This document shows positions 31,753 through 49,900 of a stretch of 64,000 bases of DNA, piece after piece. Position numbers and translations under genes: made by a program. Each line of letters starts with the position of its first letter. The stretch's first letter is position 1. The notes below the pieces were generated by a model, which was not told the origin of the DNA, searched no databases, and saw nothing but the letters and a program-made list of their open reading frames with translations. The stretch spans positions 115,038,485-115,102,484 of the forward strand of contig NC_068986.1 in the NCBI RefSeq assembly GCF_001194135.2, given 5' to 3'. The DNA comes from Octopus bimaculoides (lineage: Eukaryota).

Positions 31753-31791
<39 letters not shown>

Positions 31792-31922
31792 AACACACAC
31801 AGACACACGTGTGTGTATATATGTGGGTCTATACACATACACACACACACACACAAACACATATAAAAATCCTGCTCTCTCTCTCTCTCCCCACACACCC
31901 ACAATCTGTTATTTTGGTTTAC

Positions 31923-32030
31923 GGCAATGTTTCTTGAGTAAAAACACGCAGATCATTGACCCAATAATAATGGCTGTCAGTGGAACGACGACAGTGATGA
32001 TGATGATGTTGTTGTTGTTGGAGGTTTCAT
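31923..32030 (-). CDS. CRIM1: CRIM1 transmembrane exon (DETSNNNNIIIITVVVPLTAIIIGSMICVFLLKKHC)
   Basis: gtctctttcag| acceptor, C|gtaaac donor, 108 nt, phase 1-1; about 24 hydrophobic residues followed by a KK stop-transfer signal. Confidence 0.82.
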
Positions 32031-35000
32031 CTGAAAGAGACAATGAGAATGGCTGTTACTGGAACGATGAGAGTGATGAGGGTGTTGATGTTGTTGTTGT
32101 TGTTGTTGCTGTTGGAACTGGCGGAAGATTTATCTGAAAATATTCAAATAAAAACACGCACGTGATTAATTGAAAGAAGACAAAGTAAATCAATGCAACG
32201 ATTTCTTAACGAGGCATCAATTGAATCTGAGTTTGTGGAAAGGCACTGCATGTAGAGTGGAGTATCTTGCTGAAGGTTGTAACTTAGAGAGCTTTTCCAG
32301 TTTGCAACAACTGGGAGAGGTTACACACAGAAGTTACATGCAGTGGAGATTACATGCAGTGGAGATTATATGCAGTAGAGGTTACATGCAGTGGAGATTA
32401 TATGCAGTGGAGATTATATGCAGTAGAGGTTACATGCAGTGGAGATTACATGGAATGGAGATTACATGCAGTGGAGGTTACATGCAGTGGAGATTACATG
32501 GAATGGAGATTACATGCAGTGGAGGTTACATGCAGTGGAGATTATAAACACTGGAGATTACAGAGAGTGGAAATTACATGCAGTGGAGATTATATGCAGT
32601 GGAGATTACATGCAGTGGAGATTATATGTAGTGGAGGTTACATGCAGTGGAGATTACATGGAATGGAGATTACATGCAGTGGAGATTACATGGAATGGAG
32701 ATTACATGCAGTGGAGATTACATGCAGTGGAGGTTACATGCAGTGGAGATTACAGAGAGTGGAAATTACATGCAGTGGAGATTACAGAGAGTGGAAATTA
32801 CATGCAGTGGAGATTATAAGCATTGAAGATTATATGCAGTGGAGATTATAAGCATTAGAGGTGATATGCAGTGGAGATTATAAGCATTGGAGATTAAATG
32901 CAGTGGAAATCATATGCAGTGGAAATCATATGCAGTGGAGATTACACAGAGTTGGGGTTGAATACGATGGAGGTTACATGCAGTGGAGGTTGAACACAGA
33001 AACGCTGAATAAAAATTGTTTGAAATTGCAGTTTTAAATGTTTTCACTTCAATCAAATTATTAGTAGTCAAGTCATAGAAATCAGGATGAACATCAGAGC
33101 TTCCCACTTCCATCCCTTAAAATATCAGACTTCATTCTGTTTCAGAAACTCTCAGATCTACCTTTCTAAGTCATTCATCTCCAGAGCTTCAGCCCTTACA
33201 TGACAGTTCTCTATCATATTTATTTCTCTGGAGATTCATTTAAACATGTCAAGCTAAGGAAGATCGCAGCCATCCATCCATACAGGTATCCATCCATACA
33301 TCCTTTATGGCCATTCTCCCCCCCCCCACTTCCTTCCCCAGCTGAGAGGGCTTTGTCTTGCAGGTGCTAGTGCTGCATAAAATACACTTGTGCTGGTGCC
33401 ACGTAAGATGCACTTGTGCCAGTGCCACATAAAAGCGCCCAGTACAATCTGTAAAGTGGTTGGAATTTGGAAGGGCATCCAGCTGCAGAAACCATGCCAA
33501 AACAGACAACTGGAGCCTGGAAAGCTCTCCGACCTGACCACCTCCTGGCAAACTGTCCAAACCATGCCAACATGGAAAATGGACATTAAACGATGATGAT
33601 GATGATGATGATGATATCATCACCATTTAATGTCTGTTTTCCATGTTGGCATGGGCTGGAAGGTATGGTAGGAGCTGGAAAGCCTGACATGTTAGATGAT
33701 GGTGATGGCGATGATGACAATGTTGATGGTAGTTGTTCCAGAGACCAGTTTGAGAAATATTGTTGTTTTCTTTAGGCCATCAGAGACATCCCAAAATGGG
33801 TGAAACGTTGAGTTTTAGTCTGAAACTCTTCTCTGCCCCACCCTCAATGTTCATTGCTACCAAGTAAAGCGAGAAGGAGAATCGATAATGTACATACCTG
33901 CAGTAATTCCGGTGGCATATGATGTTGGTTTTTTATTGACCTTTTCTTTGATGACTTCTGGAGGACCAACTGTGGTCAGTACAATGGGTATTTCCTTGGA
34001 TACGATTGACTTGGCTGTTTTAGTTTCATTATCTGGCAAAGAAGAAACAAAGAAGTCAGTCCGGTGTGTGTGTGTGTGTGTGTGTGTGTGCTGATGTCCG
34101 TATGTCTTCATGTTGACACAACTCATGTCAAGATGTCGCTATTCCTTGTGATTATGGTATGGTTTATGTCCTACAGAAAGAAAATTCTGATTGCTTGGTG
34201 GTTCATGTTAAATCACTGAATAAAAGGGATAGGTTTTGAACCTGAAATGACGTGGTTGCATGGGAAACTTCTTAAACCTCACAGCCATTTTAAAAATGAC
34301 AACGATGACCACCCCCACCACCACTACCACAAATCCCTAAAATGAAAAGGATTTTTACTTACCCAGACAGACTGCACAACACTGTCCTTTACGGAAAGAT
34401 GCCTGTTGACATTTCATGGGTGGACAATTCTGTGAGAAACAGTTGATACGTCCGTTTCGACACATACAGCTTTGGCAGGGACTCACACGCCATACTTCAC
34501 CATGTTTGAATGATGTCTCGCCTCTACAATACTTCAAGTGAGGCTTACTGACCGATGCCGGTTTGTCTGGGTATTGATCTGGTGAAGAAATAGACACAGA
34601 GTCAAGGACCTATGCAATAAATAAGTAACATCATGCACACACACACACACACACTTTCTCAAGCCCTGGGACTCCTTAGTCTGGTTCCCCAGTTTCTATG
34701 GCCGATATGTGACTGAGATCACAACAATCCCTCTGGATGACAAGATGCTCTACTATAGGGTTCAAGACCAACAATTTTTGAGGGGAGGGGAAAAGTCAAT
34801 TACACTGACTCCATTATGTGACTGGTATTTTATTTCATTGACCCTAAAGGCATGAAAGGCCAAGTTGAGCTTGGCAGGATTTGAACCTAGAACGTAGAGA
34901 GCTGCAAGAAATGCTGCTTAGCATTTTGTCTTTGTTTGTAAGTATGTGTGTAAAAAGCACCCAGTTCACTCTGTAAAGTGGTTGGCATTAGGAAGGGCAT

Positions 35001-37062: not shown

Positions 37063-38064
37063 GAGATATGGAAAAGTTTGCTAGAATAGTTTTTGCATCT
37101 GACACAACTAGTTTGACATTGTCTCAATTCCTACAATGGAAGTGTTGTGTCTGAGAGACTGTTGGCTGCTCTGCCGGGTAAATGGTAAATAATAATGAGC
37201 AAGATTACGCAGCGCACACACTACAATCATATATACACTGATAAAGTATGCCTAGATACATATAGTACAAACATATACACTACACACACCTTTATATCTC
37301 TCATCATCATCCGCATTTAACATCCATTTTCCATGCTGATATGGGTTGGACAGTTTAACCAGAGATGGCCAGCTGGAGGGCTGCACCAGGTTCCAGTCTA
37401 ATTTGGCTTGGTGTCTACAGCTGGATGCTCTTCCTAACACCAACCACATTACAGAGTGGCACTGGGTGCTTTTAATGTGCCACCAGCACAAGCGCTTTCG
37501 CATGGCACCAGCATGCGTGCTTTTTGCATGGCATTGGTACAAGACTCTTGGAAGCCAGTTCTCTTCACCAGGAGGAGTGACTTCAACACTTCTGCTGTGG
37601 AGGATGGGACTTCTTCAATACAGCAAGGCACCAGATAATCTGGTTCTTTGTCATCTCATCTGAAAGGTTCAACATCCTGATGTCGTCCTTCAGTACTTCA
37701 TCCCATATCTTTCTGGGTCTCCCTCTTCCACGAGTTCCATCCATTTTGAGAGATTGGTACTTCTTTATGGAGCTGTCGGCATCATATGACCAAACCAGCA
37801 CAGTCTTCTCTCTGGCACACAGCATACAATTCCCTTTATGCTTAACTTCTCTTCCAAAACACTAGCACTCTGTCAAACATGTACACTCACATTACACATC
37901 CGGCAGAGCATACTAACCTCATTCCTTTCTAACCTTTGCATGTCCTCTGCATTCAGGGCCCACATCTCACCACCCTGTAGAATTGCTGTCTCTATAAATG
38001 CATCATACAATCTTCCTTTTGTTTGGAGATAGAAACTTTTGGTTGCCCATAGAGATAAAAGCTC

Positions 38065-46950: not shown

Positions 46951-49900
46951 AGTGTGTATATGCACCTGTCTATATATGTGTGTGTATATACATATGTCTG
47001 TGAGTGTATTTGAATGACTGCAGGTGTGTAAACACCCAGTTCTCTACACAAAGTCATGTAAACACACAAACCTCTACATGTATTACAATAATTAACTTGC
47101 TCCAGATAAACACAGATGTGCTGGCGCCACATGAAAAGCACCCATGGTGGCACCATGTGAACAGCACCTGCTCTGGTGTCACATAGAAAGCACCCAGTAC
47201 ACTGTGTAAAGTGGTTGGCATTAGGAAGGGCATCCAGCTGTGGAAACCATTACAAAACAGACAATTGAAGTCTGGTGCAGCTTTCTGGCTGGTCAGCTCC
47301 TGCCAAACTCATGCCAGCATGGGAAACGGATGTTAAATGATGATGATGATATACACACAAATGCATACTTGTATTTTACACACATACACACACACATTCA
47401 TCAGATCAGGTCTCCTGCCCCTAAATAGTTCACTATTTTGATACTTGGCTTTCTATGGCTCCTTGCGTAATGTAACCATTAGTCAGAATAGACAGGCAGA
47501 AGTGAGGGCTCTCCTCTCTTGGAAGACCAGAAAATATCATGAGTTGGCTCCTGTGCAGGTGGCATGTAAAATACACCATTTTGAGCGTGGCCGTTGCCAG
47601 TACCGCCTGACTGGCCCTCGTGCCGGTGGCACGTAAAAGCACCCACTACACTCTCTGAGTGGTTGGCTTTAAGAAGGGCATCTAGCTGTAGAAACTCTGC
47701 CAGATCAGATTGGAGCCTGGTGTAGCCATCTGGTTTCACCAGTCCTCAGTCAAATCGTCCAACCCATGCTAGCATGGAAAGCGGACGTCAAACGATGATG
47801 ATGCCCTTTCTCCTGTGATAACCACCACCAAAACGCACACACACACACAAAAGTGTAACACCTGGAATGTCTCAACTTACCGTTNNNNNNNNNNNNNNNN
47901 NNNNNNNNNNNNNNNNNNNNNNNNNNNNNNNNNNNNNNNNNNNNNNNNNNNNNNNNNNNNNNNNNNNNNNNNNNNNNNNNNNNNNNNNNNNNNNNNNNNN
48001 NNNNNNCGTTATCCATTTACACTGCAAACTTCTGCATGTCTGCCGCTGGCAATAAGTCAGGCCATTCTTGCAGCTGCATTTGGTGCAGTTGTCCAGTTTC
48101 CACACATCTCCATGTTGGTAGGATTGACCACGAGAAAAACAGCTGTTCCCTGTCACAACACGAAAATAGAAGAGGGTTAGAAGGGGTTAAAGAGGGAGTT
48201 GGAGGAGAGTTCAGAAGGACGGGGGGGGGGTGAGGAGGGGCTTAAACACATGTGGGTGTGGGTGTACTACTACAACAGACCATGTATACTATCACATACA
48301 CACATCACCTCTAACTGCTGCTGCTGTTACTGCTACTGCTACTACTACTACTACTACTACTACTACACAATAAGTACCACAAACTACTACACACACATAG
48401 ACTATCACAAACCATCGCATACATGTATACATACATACACCAACCCTCAACTCAATCAGTGAGGGACAGCTACATGGACGCTGATCAGCTAGAAATGGCA
48501 GTCAAATCTCCTTCAAATCACACCTGCTGCCTTAAAAAAAGGGTGCATTGGACAATTAGATGATAGATATATAAGTTGGGATGGGCATGAGTAGAGTGTA
48601 GATTATAAACCTACACAGTGAGAGCTAACCTACAGCTAGCTCTCACCTCCTCTTTTTATCGTCTCATGTACTTACTGTTAACACATTTGAATTTATCACA
48701 GCAGGAACCAGGCTGGTTGGTCGCCTTCTCCACCACCTCAATTCTATAGTTTTTAGAGCATTCAACAGCAGGGCACCTGTCTCTGTGTTGGCACTGGCAC
48801 CTGAAACAGGGACAAAGAAAAAGAGAGAGAGACAGAGTGAGATATGACAGGTAATATTATATTAAACTGATCACACACACACACACAAAGTGGCAACCAC
48901 ATAGAGATAAAAACACAAACATAGAATCAATGCTTACACAGATTCTGCAGAGCAACAGCCATCCTTGCTGAGTTTTTTCACCGTGTTGACACTGTCCTTG
49001 GGACAGGATTTTGGCTTAGGGCATCTCACCAGCAAACAATTTCCTGCAAGAAAAAAGAATCTACATATTTGTACTTTTAAGTAGAGAATAATGAAAATAA
49101 GGGCCTTATGAGGGGAACTACAAAGAAAGGACAAAGAAGAGGTGTACAACGGGGAGTAGGTAGGAAGGTAGATGAGAGGCATGCGAGAAGCATAAGATAC
49201 TTGCTCAAGGTGCTGTGCAGTGGGGCTTAAACCCAAGATCGCATGGTTGGCAAACAAGCTTTTTAACCACACAGCCACACCAATATTTTTCTATAGGTGT
49301 AAAATCTTTGTCAACTGATCAAGCAGGTTTGAATAGAATATACTCTACTGATGAGGTATAGTGGACCAAAACATGTCCATAGTTATCTGCCTTGCTGCAA
49401 TTTCCCCTAAGCATGTAAATTAATTTGGTGAAATAAAGACTTCATTTAAAAAAAAAAATATATGTTCCTTTTTCTTTGGGAATTGCTAACAATGACCACT
49501 AGGTTTTTGTTTTCTTCCTCCAACTAAAAGAGGACACTTCAATTAAAATTTTTTTGCATCAAACATGGAATACCCCCCACCCCCACCCCTTAATTTAGTC
49601 ACCATAGTAACAGGCAAGAAGATGATGTTGGTCAGAAGAAAGAACCTCAATTGAACCAACTGATAATTTATTTGTAAATTAAGACGAGGAACTGAATGGC
49701 AGAGCAGTGTGATAGGTAATGGTGTCAGCCAGCGGTCAGTCCAACCAGCAAGCAGTTGGTAGGAAAATTCTTCAAGTCTCGTAAGTTATTTTTTCAGTTG
49801 TTCTAAAATAAGAGCTTACTATTCTGTTAATACTTTTTATGCATTTTATGTGCGTGTGAGCAACTGTTTCTATATAGCTATTCATATGTCCATTTTCCAT

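Follow-up and report, generated by a model that had tools for sequence, protein, structure and literature searches.

A partial tandem duplication in the terminal CRIM1 exon of octopods supplies a second acceptor and a GPI-signal-like protein ending

How can the choice between two splice acceptors lying about a hundred nucleotides apart give one membrane protein two different C-termini, and what would the second ending do? The question is raised by a 64,000-nucleotide stretch of the Octopus bimaculoides genome (RefSeq assembly GCF_001194135.2, contig NC_068986.1, positions 115,038,485 to 115,102,484 of the forward strand), referred to here as the window, with all positions counted from its first letter. 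The window covers the 3' end of the O. bimaculoides CRIM1 gene, which lies on the minus strand. A preliminary description of this DNA proposed that a partial duplicate of the exon encoding the transmembrane (TM) segment provides an alternative acceptor, and that the resulting C-terminus looks like a signal for attachment of a glycosylphosphatidylinositol (GPI) anchor. The two endings are called TM and ALT below. Our best reading is a conserved switch, probably between a transmembrane and a GPI-anchored protein, of the kind known for CD58 and NCAM. The assignment to CRIM1, the partial duplicate, the alternative acceptor and the GPI-like shape of the tail all survived analysis, whereas a splice donor placed at 31923, a role in nonsense-mediated decay (NMD) and the novelty of the isoform did not.

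The identity of the gene follows from its products. Seven exon translations have VWC matches in Pfam, and the exon at 40372-40118 has three Antistasin matches. The TM C-terminus spliced from the window is an exact suffix of XP_052824467.1, named 'cysteine-rich motor neuron 1 protein [Octopus bimaculoides]', and the ALT C-terminus spliced from the window is an exact suffix of XP_014774413.1 (also UniProt A0A0L8H980). Because both C-termini exactly match two O. bimaculoides proteins, the window holds O. bimaculoides CRIM1, and the VWC and antistasin exons together with the suffix match to the named protein bear out the earlier assignment. The translation of the linker exon is present within both proteins. 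By this comparison the two RefSeq models are alternative isoforms of one gene. The IGFBP-like N-terminal domain is encoded beyond the window, and PF00219 is found on the 90% cluster of XP_052824467.1. Animal CRIM1 proteins were retrieved by an exhaustive protein search with the antistasin exon, and their names were taken from cluster look-ups. The range of the CRIM1 gene is 154 kb in Argonauta hians, 113 kb in O. vulgaris and 103 kb in O. sinensis.

Two acceptors on the minus strand lead into the terminal coding exon (Table 1). The upstream, or ALT, acceptor reads aatattttcag/ATAAATC (AG at 32135-32134, first exon base 32133), and the downstream, or TM, acceptor reads tctctttcag/ATGAAAC (AG at 32032-32031, first exon base 32030), 103 nt from the first. 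Completed by the incoming phase-1 G from the linker exon, the ALT reading is DKSSASSNSNNNNNNINTLITLIVPVTAILIVSFR, closed by a TGA at 32029-32027, and the TM reading begins DETSNNNNIIIITVVVPLTAIIIGSMICVFLLKKHC. The remaining two frames of the 103-nt ALT segment carry stops. Up to its stop the ALT-specific segment encodes (D)KSSASSNSNNNNNNINTLITLIVPVTAILIVSFR, which is the exact suffix of XP_014774413.1. Both the second in-phase acceptor and the stop just inside the TM exon are therefore where the preliminary description had put them. The 69 nt upstream of the ALT acceptor are free of further AG, and the corresponding AG-exclusion zone of the TM acceptor is 20 nt. The undisputed CRIM1 acceptors have 14-18 pyrimidines in 20 positions, a range that includes the 14/20 of the ALT acceptor. 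Its canonical AG, pyrimidine tract, branch-point candidate and phase match with the donor at 33898 fit a working acceptor. The bases of the TM acceptor's splice signals double as the ALT codons ...VTAILIVSF(R), and the GTAAC motif falls inside the ALT coding sequence. The 3' end of the duplicate does serve twice, as had been proposed, since the TM acceptor has its branch point, polypyrimidine tract and AG there as well.

Table 1. Positions of the features discussed, counted from the first letter of the window
Feature	Positions	Strand	Remarks
Linker (juxtamembrane stalk) exon	33898..34032	-	phase 1 in and out; donor 33898 common to both isoforms
ALT 3' splice-site region	32134..32206	-	pyrimidines 14/20 at -23 to -4; TTAAT branch-point-like motif at about -33
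ALT-specific coding segment	32027..32133	-	103 nt (32133-32031) plus first 4 nt of TM form (32030-32027)
TM acceptor splice signals	32031..32059	-	GTAAC branch-point-like motif 32059-32055 (A at -26); pyrimidine tract 16/20
TM form of terminal coding exon	31909..32030	-	(D)ETSNNNNIIIITVVVPLTAIIIGSMICVFLLKKHCRKPK, TAA 31911-31909; suffix of XP_052824467.1
Duplicate copy 1 (upstream; (AAC)n stalk and hydrophobic core)	32041..32102	-	aligned to 32020-31962 with one 3-nt gap
Duplicate copy 2 (downstream, within TM form)	31962..32020	-	alignment to copy 1
Candidate third copy (decayed; TM exon, 3' part)	32149..32201	-	tentative; ends in TGCGTGTTTTTA, 15 nt upstream of ALT acceptor
(GUU)13-14 tract	31754..31795	-	115-155 nt downstream of TM stop, in presumed 3' untranslated region
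16-nt minisatellite, TTACATGCAGTGGAGA on plus strand	32334..32946	-	about 38 copies, 83% matches; last CRIM1 intron, upstream of ALT acceptor

The similarity between the two copies was assessed against the rest of the window. An ungapped match of 59 nt at a spacing of 79 is 83% identical. The 39-nt non-repetitive part of the TM core matches 32079-32041 at 33/39 positions, and the next-best match on either strand of the 64-kb window reaches 23/39. Because the core match lies so far above the next-best one, the copies are paralogous, and their likeness is due neither to chance nor just to (AAC)n low complexity. The shorter comparison that had first suggested homology, over 36 nt, is identical at 30 positions, and the paralogy it implied is backed by the longer core. 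Of the six differences within the core, four affect codon position 1 and two affect position 3 (in the order 1, 1, 1, 3, 1, 3). With position 2 untouched, all amino-acid changes in the core are hydrophobic-conservative, as had been claimed; the chance of finding no position-2 difference is ~0.09, which is weak alone. Both acceptors have TTTCAG/AT(A/G)AA in common. The 12-mer TGCGTGTTTTTA occurs at exactly two sites in the window, 32160-32149 and 31950-31939, so the piece of the TM exon said to recur at 32149-32160 is an exact copy. It closes the candidate third copy listed in Table 1, which contains a 19-mer matching at 16/19 positions at a spacing of 210. A gapped alignment of 54 nt to 31989-31939 has P ~0.01 against shuffles, and 7% of other window chunks score equally; a third, decayed copy is suggestive only.

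Two other accounts of the duplicate were considered and rejected. Mutually exclusive exons do not describe it, because copy 1 is without a donor and runs straight into the acceptor of copy 2; the sole GT in copy 1 (CCA/GTAACA, 32059) would give an intron of 29 nt. Nor is it credible that a gapped draft assembly produced the duplicate as an artefact. The window does contain nine N gaps, one of which damages another CRIM1 exon, but the two copies are just 83% identical, lie away from the gaps, differ in length by 24 nt in frame and have a counterpart in three other independently assembled genomes that encode the ALT tail.

A tandem duplication of ~80-100 bp would have copied the 3' splice site of the terminal exon, its Ser/Asn-rich stalk and the TM helix over its first two thirds, leaving a terminal exon with two acceptors 103 nt apart. 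Use of the downstream acceptor (32030) would give the canonical type I protein, with a TM helix of 24 residues and the 8-residue basic tail KKHCRKPK. Use of the upstream acceptor (32133) would lead through copy 1 in the same frame, with the TM polypyrimidine tract and AG read as V-S-F-R and bases 2-4 of the TM form read as TGA. The ALT protein would then end after a marginally hydrophobic stretch of 16-17 residues, without a cytoplasmic tail.

The ALT ending is found in gene models of four octopod species, O. bimaculoides, O. sinensis, O. vulgaris and A. hians. O. sinensis isoform X2 (XP_029637484.1) ends in ...DEPSISSKGNNNNNYNNNILITLIVPVTAILLVSFR, two of the three O. vulgaris models (CAI9723789.1 and CAI9723790.1) in ...ILITLIVPVTAILLVSFR, and the single Argonauta hians model (GAB1609489.1) in ...DKDKTSTSSNNKNNIISIAVPLTAIVIVSFR. 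Compared at the protein level, the models of these last three species have homologous tails that close with ...VSFR and a stop. This ending translates GTC TCT TTC AG from the TM acceptor, followed by A TGA from the TM form. It marks the junction of the duplication because it spans the TM acceptor into the start of the TM form, and because Argonauta shares it, the duplication would predate the split between Octopus and Argonauta. The CRIM1 proteins of A. hians and O. sinensis are only 63% identical overall. The part of the ALT tail upstream of the splice-signal zone nevertheless stays hydrophobic, with IISIAVPL in Argonauta versus LITLIVPV. Neutral sequence should be scrambled at this level of identity, and the retention of the acceptor, the open frame, the Ser/Asn-rich stalk and the hydrophobicity therefore points to selection. 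On the decapodiform side, no second copy of the TM exon was detected in the entire 42.9-kb CRIM1 locus of Sepia pharaonis, and the full-length decapodiform cluster members all have the TM end. The duplication probably arose on the octopod side after the octopod-decapod split.

Whether the upstream acceptor is used was judged from public annotation. The ALT and TM forms are annotated side by side in O. sinensis and O. vulgaris, and the usable alternative acceptor foreseen in the preliminary description is supported by models from four octopod species that end in the ALT tail. XP_014774413.1 is an older RefSeq model of O. bimaculoides CRIM1 and already ends in exactly this peptide; the ALT isoform is in public annotation and is not new, contrary to what had been implied. 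Extra isoforms in NCBI Gnomon and PASA annotations generally need transcript support. In the O. vulgaris annotation, alternative splice forms were added by PASA from Iso-Seq and RNA-seq (PMC10700109), and A. hians was sequenced along with RNA-seq from four tissues (bioRxiv 10.1101/2025.05.16.652989). From these evidence-based annotations we infer that splicing to the upstream acceptor reaches a meaningful level in vivo.

Several points weigh against a functional switch, and most of them suit a different explanation, in which the duplication left the upstream acceptor behind as a tolerated by-product that is spliced at noise level or picked only by gene predictors, and the segment is conserved because the essential TM acceptor has its branch point and pyrimidine tract there and because (AAC)n slippage maintains the frame. 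Use of the ALT acceptor rests on the gene models of other groups. The newest O. bimaculoides RefSeq annotation has the TM form only. The evidence given to the O. vulgaris pipeline (PMC10700109) included the O. bimaculoides UniProt proteome, which holds the ALT-ending model, so one O. vulgaris ALT model could be homology-propagated, and the ALT model may spread between annotations by this route. The final ~30 nt that the ALT form translates, which make up the 3' third of the segment, are under constraint in any case, since they hold the TM acceptor's branch point, pyrimidine tract and AG. In the stalk, which consists of a trinucleotide repeat, slippage of (AAC)n preserves the frame cheaply. The pattern of substitutions between the copies is not significantly coding-like (P ~0.09). 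In Argonauta, the TM copy behind the ALT copy is deduced from the junction ...TTTCAG ATGA, read as SFR and a stop. We consider a by-product unlikely all the same. The ALT end comes from four species and at least three independent pipelines, and two of these species, O. sinensis and O. vulgaris, annotate it beside the TM end. Argonauta, at 63% identity, keeps the acceptor, the frame and the hydrophobicity outside the splice-signal zone. The ALT acceptor has its long AG-free zone and a pyrimidine tract like those of the gene's bona fide acceptors, and the putative older copy further upstream has decayed.

The fate of the ALT mRNA depends on where the terminal exon ends. The preliminary description had assumed a 'next donor' at 31923 and had offered, as an alternative, that the ALT acceptor yields an NMD poison isoform that lowers CRIM1. 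The annotated coding sequence is not spliced at 31923 (TGCC/GTAAAC); it reads through this GT to ...KKHCRKPK and the TAA at 31911-31909. The same ...KKHCRKPK end is common to the TM models of O. bimaculoides, O. sinensis (X1 and X3) and O. vulgaris (CAI9723791.1). In the genomic locus of Sepia pharaonis, the linker exon (32690-32773 of that locus) is followed by one terminal exon (37788-37907) that contains the TM helix, the tail (NKYRKQT) and the stop. The TM exon is, on this comparison, the last coding exon, the two stops share it, and the proposed donor is not supported. The ALT form would accordingly be a productive mRNA and not an NMD target, because both stops lie in the same last coding exon; its 3' untranslated region (UTR) is longer by 118 nt than that of the TM form. 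The 50-55-nt rule of NMD needs an exon junction downstream of the stop. Among the coding exons, which are the scope of this argument, the models place no junction downstream of the ALT stop, and the rule does not apply. The ALT TGA does precede the TM stop by those 118 nt, as a poison isoform would have it, but the TM coding sequence runs to its TAA in RefSeq and ENA models of three Octopus species, the homologous Sepia exon is terminal, and the open reading frame is conserved as far as Argonauta, which is unlike a poison segment. An NMD isoform is very improbable.

We compared the properties of the two tails to judge how the ALT form would be held at the membrane. The Octopus TM form has a hydrophobic segment of 24 residues with a summed value of -3.3 on the Hessa scale, followed by 8 basic residues, and TM forms overall have 23-24 hydrophobic residues (Hessa -3.3 to -7.5) and 7-8 basic residues. 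In all four species, the ALT form has 16-17 residues with Pro and Thr/Ser (Hessa -0.15 to -1.6), followed by one Arg. An Asn-rich spacer precedes the ALT hydrophobic stretch. The omega site was checked with a hand-made heuristic for small-x-small triplets. This rule picks out SNS in O. bimaculoides, SKG in O. sinensis and O. vulgaris, and STS in A. hians, located 12, 12 and 9 residues before the hydrophobic start, respectively. At the other end of the protein, a hydrophobic h-region (...TTFIFLIFALLSTTTS...) was recognized by eye at the N-termini of P0152 and P0156 (XP_052824467.1), and CRIM1 is presumably a secretory-pathway protein, as its family suggests. A GPI signal is described as a small omega residue with an unstructured region before it and a hydrophobic stretch after it (PMC10863630). 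This general shape is present in the ALT tails of all four species, in agreement with the GPI-signal-like C-terminus originally proposed.

These data suggest that the ALT tail may be a GPI-attachment signal, so that acceptor choice would switch CRIM1 between transmembrane and GPI-anchored forms, and we give this proposal an even chance. Among the fates open to the ALT form, GPI anchoring would be the likeliest, with odds of about one in two. Two points temper it. In the Octopus tails the sole small-x-small triplet precedes the hydrophobic start by 12 residues, near the upper limit of the usual spacer length, and GPI predictors have been called unreliable, given how closely GPI signals resemble TM domains (PMC10863630). 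The ALT protein could instead be made but not GPI-processed, either as a tail-less type I protein on an anchor of 16-19 residues or as a secreted soluble ectodomain; a tail-less form on so short an anchor would likely be retained in the endoplasmic reticulum or Golgi, or be unstable. The hydrophobic segment shares homology with a genuine TM helix and remains net hydrophobic, the terminal Arg may serve as a minimal positive-inside cue, sequence separates GPI signals poorly from TM domains (PMC10863630), and a soluble or shed CRIM1 ectodomain has been discussed for vertebrates (PMC3299674). However, a stretch of 16-17 residues that has Pro at its centre and contains two or three Thr/Ser is short and only marginally hydrophobic for a stable span of the plasma membrane, and the small-x-small triplets and the polar Asn-rich spacer are at the right distance in all four species. 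We regard this unprocessed fate as fairly unlikely.

The proposed switch between TM and GPI-anchored CRIM1 would have little to do with cytoplasmic signalling. Vertebrate CRIM1 has been proposed to tether bone morphogenetic proteins and other growth factors (PMC3299674), and its cytoplasmic domain, 82 residues long and highly conserved, is needed for beta-catenin/cadherin complexes (PMC3299674). The cephalopod tail is only 7-8 residues long: KKHCRKPK in Octopus (8 aa) and NKYR(K/N)Q(T/A) in decapodiforms (7 aa). In other bilaterian CRIM1-like representatives the TM segment is followed by 21-104 residues, often with the motif RPKSTNL. Vertebrate and octopus CRIM1 have in common the IGFBP-like N-terminus, VWC repeats flanking antistasin repeats, and a single TM segment near the C-terminus, and the short tail, against some 80 residues in vertebrates, is a lineage difference that casts no doubt on orthology. 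Since the cephalopod tail is so short, the switch would alter the mode of anchoring (lateral mobility, raft association and releasability by phospholipase) and not cytoplasmic signalling. If the ALT form is GPI-linked, a single splice choice would tune the membrane domain, mobility and releasability of CRIM1 in octopods. Cephalopod CRIM1 has almost no cytoplasmic tail, and in octopods it would have, in addition, two alternative anchors.

A switch between TM and GPI-anchored forms by alternative splicing is a known kind of system. Octopus CRIM1 resembles NCAM, where NCAM-120 (GPI) and NCAM-140/180 (TM) have a common ectodomain that receives either a GPI-signal or a TM ending by splicing. NCAM relies on a separate exon dedicated to this purpose, which brings its own poly(A) site, and its cytoplasmic domains are long, whereas octopus CRIM1 uses two acceptors of one terminal exon and one shared 3' UTR. 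The production of TM and GPI forms of NCAM by splicing is documented (PMC2290859), as is alternative splicing of CD58 into a GPI form and a TM form whose tail has 12 residues (PMC8218816). CD58 (LFA-3) is the closer parallel in its 3'-end splicing, its unchanged ectodomain and the very short tail of its TM form, 12 aa in CD58 and 8 aa in octopus CRIM1. It differs in being an immunoglobulin-superfamily adhesion ligand, whereas CRIM1 is a growth-factor binder made of VWC and antistasin repeats, and its GPI anchoring was shown experimentally, whereas that of octopus CRIM1 is inferred. Also unlike CD58, octopus CRIM1 owes its alternative end to a partial tandem duplication, and the splice site of the TM isoform supplies the last codons and stop of the ALT isoform. 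As with mutually exclusive exons, a local tandem exon duplicate is the raw material for isoforms, but here the copy has an acceptor, lacks a donor and abuts the second copy, which gives an alternative 3' splice site with a frame-dependent stop. The locus is a compact textbook case of a partial tandem duplication that makes a new protein end while the same stretch is both splice signal and coding sequence.

Three aspects appear to be undescribed: the origin of the ALT ending by partial tandem duplication of the 5' part of the terminal exon, the use of one stretch as splice signals for one form and as codons and stop for the other, and a GPI-type ending in the CRIM1 family. Among the papers listed as mentioning both 'CRIM1' and 'GPI-anchored', none has either term in its title or abstract, and the papers listed for CRIM1, 'splice variant' and 'soluble' likewise have no such term at the level of title and abstract. 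We know of no earlier GPI-anchored member of the CRIM1 family, and the octopod form, if the proposal is true, would be the first.

The acceptor region also has a potential partner in the transcript. A (GUU)13-14 tract in the presumed 3' UTR is complementary to the (AAC)n of both copies (32113-32083 and 32020-32007), which are ~250 nt away, and 31795-31754 is the sole (GTT) tract of at least four units in this sense within the window. In the predicted minimum free energy fold of 32170-31740, the (AAC)n of the ALT copy pairs with the (GUU) tract over ~31 bp (z = -5.0), and this predicted pairing leaves the TM acceptor, along with the TM coding part, in the enclosed loop. If acceptor choice is steered in this way, the two copies would vie through their (AAC)n for the one (GUU)13-14 tract, or share it, in a docking/selector-like arrangement. 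The duplex would also be a plausible substrate for ADAR in an animal with heavy RNA editing. The predicted pairing could be a regulator of acceptor choice, an editing substrate or a chance pair of microsatellites. The most elaborate proposal, an octopod TM/GPI switch of CRIM1 that arose by a duplication of ~100 bp and has its acceptor choice steered by long-range (AAC)n-(GUU)n pairing, is in our view quite improbable.

Other repeats lie close to the terminal exon. The 16-nt minisatellite in Table 1 takes up a third of the last CRIM1 intron, and degenerate copies extend to ~32240. In Sepia pharaonis the terminal exon is preceded by a (TTTTA)n-type tract of ~140 nt (37640-37785 of the locus), an extremely polypyrimidine-rich acceptor region.

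Variation was also seen in the ectodomain of CRIM1. The VWC exon at 44463-44296 (minus strand; 168 nt, phase 1-1) is missing in O. sinensis X3, in O. vulgaris CAI9723789.1 and CAI9723791.1 and in the A. hians model, and O. sinensis X1 and X2 keep the corresponding exon. It looks like a cassette exon whose skipping drops one VWC domain. An N gap at 47885-48006 removes the 3' end of another VWC exon that starts at ~48147. XP_052824467.1 reads ...CKWIRNICF... where O. sinensis has ...CKWVTIPVGECCPVCNGNICF...; because the gap truncates the exon, this difference is an artefact of the gene model and not biology. Downstream of CRIM1 on the same strand is the gene for SAE1 (SUMO-activating enzyme subunit 1; 17981-1344, minus), whose first coding exon (17981-17913) lies ~13.9 kb from the CRIM1 stop.

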